A stretch of DNA of 64,000 bases from Camelus ferus (GCF_009834535.1 NC_045711.1:12028001-12092000); one strand, 5' to 3'; counted from the stretch's first letter, positions 28,229 to 33,719 are shown. Notes: generated by a model from the letters alone, not told the origin. Made by a program: numbers and translations.

Positions 28229-29009
28229 CCCGATCCCCACCGTCTGAGACTGAAGTCCAGGGCCCTCACTTCCGTTCTGCAGGATCGAGCAAAGAGCAAC
28301 TGGGACCCTTTAAGGGGCCTACAAATTCGGATCGCGGAAAGCCGCGGGAGCTGGGGGAGCGAGGCTGTGGGGACGCCGCGAGCTGGGAAGCCGAAGCCCA
28401 ATTCCGGCTACAGCGGGGCCGAGAAAGTGGTCGGGCGAGTGCGCTTCATAGCCCAGTAGCCCCTAAATTCTGCCTCCGCCGGCGTTCAACCACCAGCCAA
28501 TCAGCTTGCAGAGCAGGCATGTCCCCGCCCCCCGGTCCTACCCACCGAGGCCCGGTCTCGTGACCGCGCCCCTGGTCAGGGGTCAAGGCTGGACTGCCGA
28601 GGCTTCCTCGCTGTTGTTACGTGGGTGTTCCAGCCTCCACTGGAGAAATCCCACGGCCCAAAGACACCTCCTTCTTTAACTGAAGTGTGCAGTGATTACC
28701 TGCTCTACCCTTCACTCAAACTCACCCATTCCAGCCCACCCAGACCCTGGATGAGCCCCAAGACCTCCAGCTCATTCCTACTGGCTTAAAGTGTTACTTC
28801 TCTTGTATTTTAAATGGGTCGGGGGAGAGGGTGATGAATTTCTATTGGTAAATTGCTAGGCCTTGTCATAAACAATCAAGAGGAGATAACCGGGAGTTGG
28901 GAGGGGCGGGTTTCTTAGTATCTACTGACTGTCACTCAGAGACAATACCTCCCTATGAGAAAAGCCTCAGAGGCCTGGGAAAATACTGCGAGAGGAGCTC
29001 AGAGCAGAT

Positions 29010-29170
29010 ACCAGGCACCATGCCTGCATTATCTCGATTCATCCTCATTCACAGAAACCCCATAAAGTAGGTATTATTTTTCAAGTTTTACAGACAAGGA
29101 CACTAAAGCACACTGGGGGGTGACTTGCCCACAGTCACTCAGCTAGTATTTGGGATTCTGAGTCTCAGCT
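29010..29170 (-). mobile_element. MIR remnant between SAT2 and SHBG
   Basis: MIR core-like AATCCTCA...GTAGGTATTATT...TTTTACAGACAAGGACAC...GACTTGCCCACAGTCACTCAGCTAG. Confidence 0.6.
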
Positions 29171-29394
29171 GTAGGCCTCGCGGAGGATGCTACTTGGGGA
29201 GCCCAGCAGGACTGTTCCTGTTGGTAGATCTCTTGATTGTCATCAAGGCAGCCTCCGCAGGTGGGCAGAAGGCTTGGAAGACACGGTCAGGCTCTAGAGG
29301 AAGGGAAGAGGGAAGTCCTCTCCCAGCTCATAACTTTCTCAGCAGTGGGGGAGGGTAGTGGAGGAACTCTGTCCCTTTCTCCATTTGTCCTCAG

Positions 29395-29465
29395 AGGGGC
29401 CAAAGGGTCAGTGGCCCTGTCTCCTGCCTTCCTTCTTACCCCTGAGGCAACCTTTAACCCTCCAC
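29395..29465 (+). promoter_or_regulatory. SHBG proximal promoter: nuclear-receptor direct-repeat element and TATA-like HNF4A site
   Basis: GGGGCCAAAGGGTCA at about 29396-29410 and CCTTTAACCC at 29451-29460, in the positions of the human SHBG footprints (recalled). Confidence 0.55.
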
Positions 29466-29542
29466 CAACCATGTGTGAGGCTGCCTGCCCCCATGCTTTC
29501 TCCCCAGAGCTGTCTGAGGCACAGAGAGGACCAAGGCTGATA

Positions 29543-32382
29543 ATGGAGAGCAGAGGTCCACTGGCCACATGGCATGGGCTGCTTCTGCTGCTGCCGCTGA
29601 TGCCTCCTAGCCACGCAGGAAGGGCCCTGAGACACACTGTCCCCAGCCAGGTGCAGGGGCAGGACAGGGTGCTCAGCCCCATCTGTGTTTAAATGAGCTA
29701 CTCTTCGGCTCTGCCCTGTTCCTTTCTTTCCTCCCCTGGCCTTGTAGCAGTGCCTCTCCTTCCCTCCCTCTGTCTCCGGCATGTCCTTATTTCAGCTTGT
29801 TTGTTTTCTATCTCTGACAGAGGACTCAGGACCCTCCTGCTCTACACCTCAGCAATGGCCCAGGACAAGAGCCTGTCACCATCATGACCTTCAACCTCAC
29901 CAAGATCACAAAGTATGGGGTTGACCTAATTCCTTGACCTAGTCCCCTGACCTCACCCTCTCTCCATCATCTCCTTTCTTTTCCATTTCTCCCTGCCCTT
30001 CTCTCTCCCTGAAGTCCACCTCCCTCAACCTCACATCTACCATCAAAGGGCACACCCCATACCCAGTCCTTCTGTGTCCTTCCAGAACCTCCTCTTCCTA
30101 TGAGTTTCGCACCTGGGATCCAGAGGGAGTGATTTTTTATGGTGATACCAACCCAAAGGATGACTGGTTTGTGCTGGGACTTTGGGATGGCAGGCCTGAG
30201 GTCCAGCTTCACAATCACTGGGCCCAGCTTACAGTGGTCATCGGACCCTGGCTGGATGATGGGAGGTGGCACCAGGTAAGCCAGATCTAGTCCTGAGAGA
30301 GGGGTGTCTTGAGCTGGTCTGCGGAAGGGAACAGAACCAAGTTACTGGGTATCCTTTTACCATTGTCATCTCATTGAATCCACATAAAAGCCCCATGGAG
30401 CTGCTATTCTTGTCCCCATTTTTTTCAAAGAGGAATTCTGAGGCTTAGTATGTAAGTGACAAGTCCCAAGTGAGCTAGTGACGTTAGCTGACTCGTCAAG
30501 TACGTGTTCTTTCTGCCATACAAAGCTGCCTCTGAAGAAAGTGGTGAAGGCAGGCCTCAGGGGTCCTGGTTCTGCTTCTCTTTTCCTTCCTGCAGTTAGA
30601 AGTGAAGATCCATAGAGACTCTGTGCTGCTGGGGTGGATGGGGAGGAGGTGCTGCCTGCGTCTGAGACAGGTCTCTGGGCCTCTGGCCTACAAACCCCAG
30701 CCCATCATGAGGATTGCGGTGGGGAGGCTGTTGTTCCCTGCCTCCAACCTCTGGTTACCGGTAACTGCATCACAGGAGTAACCAAAGCTGGTAAAGCTCT
30801 GCTGGCTGGGTGGCCATGGGGGTCTAAGTCCACACTTCACGGAGAGGGGATGGGGTGAGTGCTGCATGGGGGGAGGCCAAATACTTGTGTCTTGGAGGGG
30901 AATAAGCTGAGGGTGGAGAGGCTGGGACTAGGGCTCAGATGTCCTGATTCCAGCATCCCCACATCTTCCCTTTCCCCCATGGGCTCCAACTGGTCCCTGC
31001 CCTGGATGGCTGCCTGCGCCAGCATGACTGGCTGGACCAACAGGCCCAGAGCTCAGCATCTGTCCCCACTGGCCTCAGAAGCTGCTCCGTAGAGTCCCAA
31101 CCTGGGATATTCTTCCCTCCAGGGACTGGTGCAGAACGCAGTCTTCAAGGTAAAGGCCATCTTTCTCTCCATGACCAGCTTGTGTCCATTTCCCTCCACC
31201 ACTAGCCTCTTCCATCCACAAATACCCAACCTTGAGACCTCAGGAAGATCATTTCTCCCCCACCCCCAGACATTCCCCAGCCTCATGTAGAGCCCTGGGC
31301 CTTCTCCCTGGACCTGGGACTCCAGCTAGCAGCAGGCTCAGGCCCTCTCCTTGCCCTTGGGACCCCAGAAAACCCTACTCGGCTCAGCCTTCACCTCCAA
31401 GATCAAGTAAGAGAGGGATGCTTCCTGTATATGCTGGAGCCTGGAAGCAGTGGGAGAAAAGGGGACTCCAAGAAGTCAGTACTAGGAAAGCTTAAGGGTA
31501 GGGGTTGGGGGATGGGGGGCCTGCAGAGACACATGTTGAAGCTGCCTACACCAAGCAAATGGCTTTTACTTAAGATTGTATATTTACTTGGGACTTGGGG
31601 TGGGTGTGGTTTTATAGAAGGCCAAGCCAGGAGAATGGAGGCAGGATCGAGGTGGTGGGAATGGCCAGTAATTAGACTGTGTGGCTAAGAGGCAGAATTG
31701 AGGCAGCCAGAGTGGGACCACAAGGTTCACTCTTTCCTTCCCAACTTGTGTCCCTTCCAATATACTCTGCATAAGGTGGTACTGTCTTCTGGGTCGGAGC
31801 CAGGGCTGGACCTGCCCCTGGTCTTGGGACTCCCTCTTCAGCTGAATCTGACTGTGTCCAGGGTGGTTTTGAGCCAGGGGCCAAAGAAGGAGATGCTTAC
31901 TCTGCCTCCTGTGGGTCCTGGCTCCCTCTTCAACCTTTGGGCCCAGCTGCAGGGGCATCTCTTCCTGGGGGCTTTGCCAGGTAAGAAAGTGATGTCCACG
32001 TTTCTCAGCACACCACTGGAAACAGCTAAGGGGAGGGGAGAAGATGGGAAGGGGTGCATTTTTAGGGGAAGGAAACCTCTGGGAGGGAAGAGGAAAAGGC
32101 TACAAGAAGAGAGAGGGTAAGCGGGCAGTGGGAGGAAATGCTTTCAAAAATTTAGGTTGGAGAACTGGAAAAGCAGGGAGGAGCTTCTGGATCCAAGCCA
32201 CCCTAATGTCCCCTCAATGCTACCTCCCTCTAGGAGAGGCCTCTTCTGCCTCCTTTTGCTTGGATGGCCTTTGGGCACAAGGCCAGAGGCTGGACATGGA
32301 CCGGGCCTTGAGCAGAAACCAGGACATCTGGACTCACAGCTGTCCTCAGAGCCCAAGCAATGGCACTGACACCACCTATTAA
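29543..32382 (+). pseudogene. SHBG: Sex hormone-binding globulin locus with disabling-type lesions (candidate unitary pseudogene or splice-rescued gene)
   Basis: Exon homologs 29543-29650, 29821-29912, 30086-30275, 30596-30760, 30990-31149, 31270-31406, 31773-31980, 32234-32382. Exon 4 has a -1/+4 compensated frameshift; the exon 5 acceptor is AA (30988-30989); the exon 7 acceptor is AT (31771-31772). Gene identity is secure ([26 protein letters not shown]); pseudogene status is inferred. Confidence 0.7.
30340..30500 (-). mobile_element. MIR remnant in SHBG intron 3
   Basis: CTCATTGAATCCACATAAAAGCCCC...CCCCATTTTT...GAGGAATTCTGAGGCTTAG matches the reverse MIR core. Confidence 0.6.
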
Positions 32383-32383
32383 A
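32378..32383 (+). terminator. SHBG poly(A) signal ATTAAA overlapping the stop codon
   Basis: TAT TAA A: the hexamer includes the TAA stop. Confidence 0.6.
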
Positions 32384-32407
32384 TCCCTACCTAAGAACCC
32401 CCTTTGA

Positions 32408-32620
32408 ACGTCACTCATTCATTTATTCAACAAATATTTACTGTGCATCTGTAATGTACCAGGTGCTGTGCCAAGCACTGGGTTATACTGATGAGCGACA
32501 TTAACCCTGCTTCCTGCCCTCTTGGTGCTCACGGTCCCCTGGGGGAGGCAGGCATCCATCAAAGCCTAACAAGTGAGTGGATAATTGGAAACTCTGATAA
32601 GCATCATAAAGGAGCAGTCA
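32408..32620 (-). mobile_element. LINE-2 3' end remnant
   Basis: TCATTCATTTATTCAACAAATATTTACTG...CCAGGTGCTGTGCCAAGCACTGGG. Confidence 0.65.
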
Positions 32621-33719
32621 GGGAGCTGAGAGAGCTTGGAGGCCAGCTGCCTTGACCTGGGTTGGGGGGGAGTCAAGGAGGGCTTTCTGAGGAAGTGATG
32701 ATAGCACCCACAGATACATACACCCCCACCTCCTTCCCCAGCAGCTACTCCTTTGGGACTTTAGCTTCCTCCCTCTGAGGCTGGTCCCCAGAAACCAGGA
32801 GGGAAGGGAAGAAGAGATGGGATTTTGTTGTCCTTTAGACTAGCCACTGCTATGCAAGAAAGAAGCAGCAGGGGGCGTGAGTGGGTCATAGAAAGATGAG
32901 GGCGGGGGTTCTGGGAAAAGGGGTGGAGGCAGCAGGGAGAAAATAAAAGGGAGGAGAGCAGAGGGAGAAAGCTGCCTGTCTCTCCTAGCCTCGGTGTACT
33001 TGCTGGGTTCCCACAGGAATTTGTCTTTACTCCATTAAACAAGAATTGGCTTGTGCTAGTCCCAGCTGGAAAGGACAGATTCAGGAATATCTCTGCCCTC
33101 AAAGAATATATGGTGACCCAGCCCTCGGCTCCCAGACCTCTGCAGAATCCTGGTGCCCCAGCTCCTCCCTGGGGCACCCTTTTGCCCCAGCCCTCAGCTC
33201 CCTGGGAAACTTCATGCCCAACCCCCCAACCCCTAGGTCCCAGCTCTCAGCCCTCTTGCAAATCCTTACATCCTAGCCCGAAGCTCCCAGCCCCCTAGGG
33301 AACTCCAGCCGTCAGTCCCCACCTCTCAGTCCTCATCCCTCTTAGGAACTGTTAACCTAGCCCCCATCTCCAGACCCCATGGGGATCCTAGTGTCCCAGC
33401 TTCCCAGGTGATGAGGATCTTCCTACCAGTAACCCAGGCAACAGGGTGAGTCACTCACTGGACCTTCTGTCCCCTTGTTGCAGGGATCAGCCAGGACCTA
33501 AATGGCTCCAGGGTAAGGAGACTTCCAGAGAGTCTCTGGGTTGGAAGACACAAATCCTAGGCCCCTCCTTGGACCCTCTTGATCTCAAGTTTGCAAGATC
33601 TATAGCTGCCTCCATCCAGTCAGAGTGTTTTGCAGGAAAGTCTTCAGCATGGCGAGGGAGCCCCAATTCAACTCTGGTCCCTGGGCAATGTTCAAGGTCA
33701 GCCTGGGCCACTTGGACAT

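Follow-up and report, generated by a model that had tools for sequence, protein, structure and literature searches.

The SHBG gene in a stretch of 64,000 nucleotides of Camelus ferus DNA (GCF_009834535.1 NC_045711.1:12028001-12092000; hereafter the window) carries in its fourth exon a one-nucleotide deletion and, 20 nt away, a four-nucleotide tandem duplication, and comparison with other camelids and with outgroup mammals shows that this pair of indels is real and more than chance. Its sequence suggests that we are probably dealing with a true compensatory pair, fixed in a gene that has been kept under selection and that still encodes an SHBG, albeit a remodelled one. We prefer this reading because the two indels are close to each other and cancel exactly, because omega is below 1, and because the residues of the ligand pocket are preserved. 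SHBG is a clinically important steroid carrier, in its functional form a secreted homodimer to which DHT, testosterone and estradiol bind, and the hairpin affected by the pair has been characterised crystallographically.

A deletion and a tandem duplication in exon 4

The gene lies on the plus strand and runs from ATG to stop at 29543..32382, in an exon model that was built by hand from the sequence and that comprises eight exons (29543-29650, 29821-29912, 30086-30275, 30596-30760, 30990-31149, 31270-31406, 31776-31980 and 32234-32382, all on the plus strand). The spliced ORF of 401 codons is intact, with no internal stops, and the 401-aa protein that it encodes is 100% identical to the C. ferus RefSeq protein XP_006175875.2; 2 residues separate it from the C. 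bactrianus model and 5 from C. dromedarius X1 (98.75% identity), which marks the window as DNA of a Bactrian-type camel. Exon 4 (30596..30760, plus strand) has AG and GT flanks and measures 165 nt in the camelid window versus 162 nt in whale, oryx and bat, in line with an earlier note on this DNA, made from the sequence alone, which had described the exon as longer than the 162 nt of its human counterpart. Its translation is LEVKIHRDSVLLGWMGRRCCLRLRQVSGPLAYKPQPIMRIAVGRLLFPASNLWLP, beginning LEVKIHRDSVLLGWMGRRCCLRLRQ, and human SHBG PDB chains align over the full exon (E about 3e-13), interrupted only by a gap of one residue, at EVDGEE-VL in human versus GWMGRRCCL in camel. The fox exon 4 is also 165 nt long, through a 3-nt gain elsewhere in the exon that is unrelated.

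Both indels were located in a DNA alignment of exon 4 that brought together the window, C. dromedarius and Vicugna pacos with the loci of Balaenoptera acutorostrata, Oryx dammah and Rhinolophus ferrumequinum. The deletion falls in a run of four G at 30631..30634 (plus strand), where the ancestral sequence had five (G5, CTG GGG GTG): the run reads CTGGGGGTG in whale and bat, CTCAGGGTG in oryx and CTGGGGTG in the three camelids (CT-GGGGTG). The earlier note had placed a missing base near 30632, and the loss of one nucleotide stands, but the lost base is a G of the G5 run of the artiodactyl ancestor and not the A of a human GAG codon. The second indel is a tandem CTGC CTGC duplication at 30652..30659 (plus strand), which adds four nucleotides and restores the frame, converting the ancestral GTGCTGCGTCTG into the camelid GTGCTGCCTGCGTCTG; the alignment with the three outgroups (GTGCTGC[CTGC]GTCTG in camelids versus GTG----CTGCGTCTG in outgroups) bears out the same note on this point.

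Between the two indels lies the frameshifted segment (30635..30655, plus strand), seven codons, TGG ATG GGG AGG AGG TGC TGC, that encode WMGRRCC in place of VDGEEV. Its 21 nt match the ancestral-type sequence of whale exactly and are read in the +1 frame, and VDGEEVL remains legible one frame over, in an ORF at 30634, just as had been claimed from the sequence. Reverting both changes in silico, by removing one CTGC and adding one G, yields LLGVDGEEVLRLRQ exactly. Introduced alone in silico, the -1 deletion gives ...GWMGRRCCV and then a premature stop, and the +4 duplication leaves the reading out of frame, with a stop in exon 5; since either mutation by itself cuts the protein short, the two act together as one unit. 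Neither indel length (-1 and +4) is divisible by 3, the net change being +3 with a spacing of 20 nt, and in the 1.2 kb of coding sequence the camelid stem shows no frameshifting indels besides these two. According to a rough calculation for 1.2 kb, the chance of two random frameshifts falling within about 25 nt of each other and compensating is about 2%. Indels so close together that cancel so exactly are predicted if selection favoured a rescue or if both arose in one event, and are not what would be expected of random decay.

Distribution of the patch and its consequences for the protein

At the DNA level the window, C. dromedarius and V. pacos carry both indels, and whale, oryx and bat carry neither. 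The RefSeq SHBG proteins from C. ferus, C. bactrianus, C. dromedarius and V. pacos all show the resulting patch, so that, as to which camelids carry the indels, a point raised in the earlier note, both occur in all four of the species sampled (three Camelus species and the alpaca). Some 130 further SHBG sequences from mammals lack the patch; they span cetaceans, ruminants, hippopotamus, bats, carnivores, pangolins, primates, rodents, lagomorphs, afrotherians and xenarthrans, and in every one of them the segment has the constant length x[V/L][D/N]xxxxLx. GWMGRRCC, which the note had allowed might also turn up in outgroups, does not do so among them. In alpaca the patch reads GWMGRRCCLC, with an additional Arg to Cys change that is also common in other mammals at that position. 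On this distribution the pair was fixed on the camelid stem, before the split between Camelini and Lamini. Since both indels predate the divergence of camelids, their order is unrecoverable from living species, and no sampled living species has only one of the two.

Searched against a collection of 5.8 billion proteins, the genomic ORF across the patch matched seven fragments, all from other mammals, all of the ancestral VDGEE type and none from camelids. The protein clusters that contain camel and alpaca SHBG held RefSeq/UniRef models only, and no transcript-derived or Logan sequences were found in them. The camelid RefSeq SHBG models are predictions, and a literature search covering camels, dromedaries and camelids returned nothing relevant on SHBG sequence, expression or serum binding.

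The effect of the pair on the protein is to turn GVDGEE-VL into GWMGRRCCL. In human mature numbering, Val116 is replaced by Trp and Asp117 by Met, two positions that are nearly invariant in the alignment of SHBG orthologues; Glu119 and Glu120 become Arg-Arg; and Val121 becomes Cys next to one inserted Cys, which leaves the protein with two adjacent cysteines and one extra residue. Three acidic residues thereby give way to two basic ones, a local charge swing of five units. A natural compensated frameshift that adds two cysteines, as originally proposed for this exon, is supported by the outgroup DNA alignment and by four camelid species. The dimer interface of human SHBG was reportedly defined by Avvakumov in 2001 and Grishkovskaya in 2000, and Val89 and Leu122 are said, after Avvakumov et al. 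2001, to be its key residues; the residue aligned with Leu122 is still Leu in camelids.

His101 and Asp117 form zinc-binding site III, which has been placed near the SHBG dimer interface (PMC8804615). As the patch replaces Asp117, here with Met, one of the two ligands of this site is removed in camelids, and His101 is kept. The earlier note had assigned the change to a conserved turn at the dimer interface, and this is right insofar as Val116 and Asp117 hardly vary and zinc site III lies near the interface, but the Leu122 residue itself is retained; the note's further suggestion, that the patch probably disrupts dimerisation or folding, finds no support in any of the results and is not favoured by the selection analysis described below. 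When the functional residues of SHBG were listed from PMC8804615, the steroid-contact residues were found to be kept at the positions aligned with Ser42, Asp65, Phe67, Asn82 and Met139. In the camelid 401-aa model the calcium site Asp50/Glu52/Ala160 is conserved and the four disulfide cysteines, Cys164-Cys188 and Cys333-Cys361, are retained as well.

Domain and structure predictions gave lower values for camel. Pfam Laminin_G_1 scores 85 bits on camel SHBG (cut-off 24), some 30 bits lower than on whale (119) and bat (115), and the Laminin_G_2 match on the camel protein ends at residue 142, just upstream of the patch. With the same 49-orthologue alignment, the mean AlphaFold2 pLDDT was 40 for camel versus 60 for the whale control, both too weak to interpret, and the camel values were below those of whale in both LG domains and not near the patch alone, a non-specific difference.

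Selection, splice sites and competing explanations

Selection on the gene was analysed with the patch masked, by fitting GY94 branch models with our own likelihood code to an eight-taxon codon alignment, in which the window, dromedary and alpaca were joined by minke whale, oryx, fox, pangolin and horseshoe bat. Omega was 0.46 on the background branches and 0.54 on the camelid stem and crown taken together, a value that does not differ significantly from background (p=0.52) and that is significantly below 1 (p=0.009). Taken alone, the camelid stem gave 0.55 (p=0.04 against omega=1) and the crown 0.53, the latter not significantly below 1 (p=0.10) in a test with little power for recent times. 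Counted by parsimony, the ratio of non-synonymous to synonymous changes (N:S) was 29:17 for the stem and 15:13 for the crown, and values in this range are also seen on the other branches. SHBG is fairly fast-evolving throughout, and outside the patch additional relaxation in camelids is not detectable, at a power that is low for the period following the event.

Other comparisons bear on constraint within the family. Camel and alpaca diverge by 2.13% in exons and 2.08% in introns, a ratio of about 1.0 that rests on small counts (25 exon and 34 intron differences), and the same ratio lies between 0.7 and 0.85 in outgroup pairs. Only one intron indel separates camel from alpaca, and for this reason a crown without new coding frameshifts is weak evidence. 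At two arginines, Camelus has undergone a CGG to TGG change (Arg to Trp), and the other sequences of the eight-taxon alignment, alpaca among them, keep both; one of the two sites, R100, sits in a column that is at least 95% conserved. At sites with this degree of conservation (at least 95%), 6-7 changes are private to camel, the patch accounting for two, and the median across 60 sequences is 2.

The splice sites of the gene are canonical with the sole exception of the exon 5 acceptor dinucleotide (30988..30989, plus strand), which is AG in outgroups and AA in the window, dromedary and alpaca. Because of this change the 401-aa product requires a non-canonical splice, and the 401-aa RefSeq X1 models presuppose such an AA acceptor. 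Alternative in-frame AGs are available on the plus strand at 30952-30953 (+36 nt, inserting 12 residues), 31021-31022 (-33 nt, deleting 11 residues) and 31042-31043 (-54 nt, deleting 18 residues), the last of these being used in the RefSeq X2 models and in alpaca X1; Cys164 is lost with both of the deleting acceptors (-33 and -54 nt). The first 54 nt of exon 5 accumulated a single change along the long camelid stem, which argues that the loss of the acceptor was late or tolerated. The acceptor of exon 7 has also moved (31770..31775, plus strand): in outgroups the junction falls between CAG and AAG, and in camelids CAT AAG precedes it, 3 nt further downstream, so that one Lys codon is lost in frame. 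In alpaca exon 1, a 32-nt deletion frameshifts the signal peptide, which is intact in Camelus, and alpaca exons 2-8 are open. Neither the window nor the locus of C. dromedarius contains an uncompensated stop or frameshift, and for C. ferus and C. bactrianus RefSeq gives full-length protein models.

How the pair arose, and what kind of gene it now sits in, can be read in several ways. The loss of one base in a homopolymer is a typical sequencing error, yet the probability that the feature is an artefact of sequencing, assembly or alignment is close to nil: C. dromedarius (GCA_036321535.1) and V. pacos (GCA_048564905.1), which were assembled independently, show the same indels, C. ferus and C. 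bactrianus have the patch in their RefSeq proteins, and the nucleotide alignment is unambiguous. The presence of the pair in camels and alpaca and its absence from about 130 other sequences mean that it is not an assembly error, an explanation rejected on the ground that the indels are common to four species. It is rather unlikely, in our estimation, that both changes were produced at once by a complex mutation, through template switching or slippage over some 30 nt, so that a null intermediate never existed. Such an origin would suit two indels that are just 20 nt apart, that are both of the slippage type in a repetitive context (the G run, and CTGC adjoining GCTGC) and of which no living species sampled carries just one, although it has been argued from genome-wide patterns that pairs of this kind usually arise in two separate steps on a single haplotype (Biba et al. 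2022, PMC8935012). A single event is in any case a variant of the main explanation and does not compete with it over what the feature is.

Somewhat more credible, although still doubtful, is the possibility that camelid SHBG is decaying or already non-functional, the indel pair being one of several lesions under relaxed constraint and the restoration of the frame partly luck, and that no functional steroid carrier is secreted at present. The exon 5 acceptor AG has been lost across camelids, as might be expected of such a gene, yet the single stem change in the 54 nt that follow suggests that this loss was late or tolerated. Nearly invariant residues, Val116 and Asp117, have been replaced, but those of the steroid contacts, the calcium site and the disulfides are all retained. 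The frameshifting deletion of 32 nt in the signal-peptide exon of alpaca would also fit decay; against it, the Camelus copies are free of stops and uncompensated frameshifts and exons 2-8 of alpaca are open. Equal exon and intron divergence within camelids, the two Arg to Trp changes of Camelus, the 6-7 changes private to camel at highly conserved sites (at least 95%; median 2) and a crown omega of 0.53 that is not significantly below 1 (p=0.10) all point in the direction of relaxation, but omega for camelids as a whole is 0.54, close to background, and omega=1 is rejected (p=0.009). The reduced Pfam score and an AlphaFold2 confidence below that of whale with the same alignment could be counted on the side of decay, although they are non-specific, and a random compensating pair within about 25 nt in 1.2 kb would be expected only about 2% of the time. 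Camelid SHBG resembles unitary pseudogenes in its clade-wide loss of a splice site and in the exon 1 frameshift of alpaca, and differs from them in that the Camelus ORF is intact, omega is 0.54 and not 1, and the frameshifts of the stem cancel each other.

On the reading that we prefer, a compensatory pair in a gene still under selection, the G5 run contracted to G4 and CTGC was duplicated in tandem 20 nt away, both changes being of the slippage type. The pair puts 21 nt of ancestral sequence into the +1 frame and then restores the frame. The likely route is that the second indel arose on a rare haplotype already bearing the first, and it may have been retained as the rescue of a gene that still mattered. 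Camelids would then have continued to make SHBG, its hairpin remodelled but its steroid pocket preserved, as a protein in which zinc site III is probably absent and the dimer contacts are possibly altered.

Relation to known compensatory frameshifts and significance

Judged from its sequence, the camelid SHBG pair belongs to a known class, that of pairs of compensatory frameshifting mutations (pCFM). In vertebrates, Biba, Klink and Bazykin (2022) reported 468 low-confidence genes with such pairs, 15 of them in several species and 5 after filtering (PMC8935012). Their screen was limited to indels of 1-2 nt (PMC8935012), and the -1/+4 pair of SHBG falls outside it because the second indel is of 4 nt; SHBG is not named in the text of that study or in one supplementary file (PMC8935012). 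Like the pCFMs of RAB36, ARHGAP6, NCR3LG1 and RASSF4, in which the spacing ranges from a few to about 100 nt (PMC8935012), the SHBG pair consists of two non-3n indels that fall on one branch, and it shares with the pCFMs of that study a restored frame, an intervening segment read in a new frame, clade-wide inheritance and a fairly high dN/dS. Members of the class tend toward poorly conserved segments of weakly constrained genes (PMC8935012). SHBG fits the trend toward weak constraint (omega about 0.46) but not that toward poorly conserved segments, and, unlike in typical pCFMs (PMC8935012), the segment that has been rewritten takes in residues of a structured LG-domain hairpin that hardly vary.

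The comparison with human SHBG is equally two-sided. Exon 4 of camel aligns with the human protein end to end (E=3e-13), and the residues that anchor the steroid, those of the calcium site and those of the disulfides are conserved. The camelid protein differs in that the stretch E115-L122 (EVDGEEVL) has become GWMGRRCCL, with one residue and two cysteines gained and Asp117 lost, and in that camelids are without one Lys at the exon 6/7 junction and without a canonical exon 5 acceptor.

Few clade-wide compensated frameshifts withstand quality control: five were kept in the only systematic screen of vertebrates. The camelid case is a natural experiment on how far an LG-domain hairpin can be rewritten, for which GVDGEEV offers a clean revertant for comparison. 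Pipelines for the detection of gene loss may misclassify camelid SHBG, and immunoassays or free-hormone calculations that presume a conventional SHBG in camels or alpacas may be wrong. Beyond being tolerated, the patch, which takes away zinc site III and puts two arginines and two cysteines into the strand beside the dimer interface, could have changed the way in which camelid SHBG works, through an altered quaternary structure (for instance monomeric or disulfide-linked) or through altered metal regulation, and on the present sequence evidence we consider this quite unlikely. If it were true, the later changes at the splice acceptors could represent further steps of remodelling, or the start of the loss of a plasma carrier in an induced-ovulating lineage.

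Splice acceptors of exons 5 and 7

In all three camelid loci (3/3), the AG that forms the exon 5 acceptor of SHBG in whale, oryx, bat and fox is replaced by AA (window 30988-30989; L001:4446-4447 in dromedary; L002:4105-4106 in alpaca). The closest AG dinucleotides are all in-frame, and lie at window 30952-53, which would add 12 residues, and at 31021-22 and 31042-43, which would remove 11 and 18, respectively. The last of these is the site chosen in the RefSeq X2 isoform models, with the resulting loss of the disulfide cysteine, Cys164. At the exon 7 acceptor (window 31770-31775) the outgroup sequence CAG/AAG, the slash marking the splice site, reads CATAAG/ in camelids, a displacement of 3 nt that leaves the protein one Lys shorter and is common to the window, dromedary and alpaca.

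Predicted isoforms and reading frame

RefSeq isoform models of 286 aa exist for dromedary, Camelus ferus and alpaca, the C. ferus entry also bearing a C. bactrianus accession. These models begin out of frame at an ATG in exon 3, and their predicted splice joins a donor within the same exon to an AG (window 30647-30649) inside the patch, the exon 4 segment rewritten by the compensated frameshift, where reading resumes as ...W/CCLRLRQ. In the alpaca assembly, exon 1 (L002:2692-2767) has a deletion of 32 nt, either genuine or specific to that assembly, from the region coding for the leucine-rich signal peptide, so that MESRGPLATW is followed directly by a stop. In its current RefSeq model, the alpaca protein begins not in exon 1 but at the internal Met of exon 2.

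Coding changes and structure models

Two Arg to Trp replacements (CGG to TGG; window 30183-30185 and 30249-30251) are specific to Camelus, both sites being Arg in every other member of the eight-taxon alignment, including alpaca, and one of them, R100, falls in a column that is at least 95% conserved. Since the split from dromedary, the SHBG coding exons of the Bactrian lineage represented by the window have acquired four non-synonymous changes (T119I, G137R, N162Y and G292E) versus one synonymous, too few to test. The SHBG region is free of N, the 949 present in the window all lying outside 29000-33000. With the same 49-sequence alignment, the AlphaFold2 model of camel SHBG (m25e1154ace43) has a confidence about 20 points lower than that of whale (mbbacf1283964), a deficit that spans both laminin G-like domains and extends beyond the surroundings of the patch.

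An SHBG-like protein of another species

In P0010, a predicted SHBG-like protein of 365 aa from another species, exons 3-4 are read out of frame (…CCWGWMGGDAVPETGLWASGQQSPAHHEDC…). This protein is either a mis-model or the product of a further lineage with disrupted SHBG.
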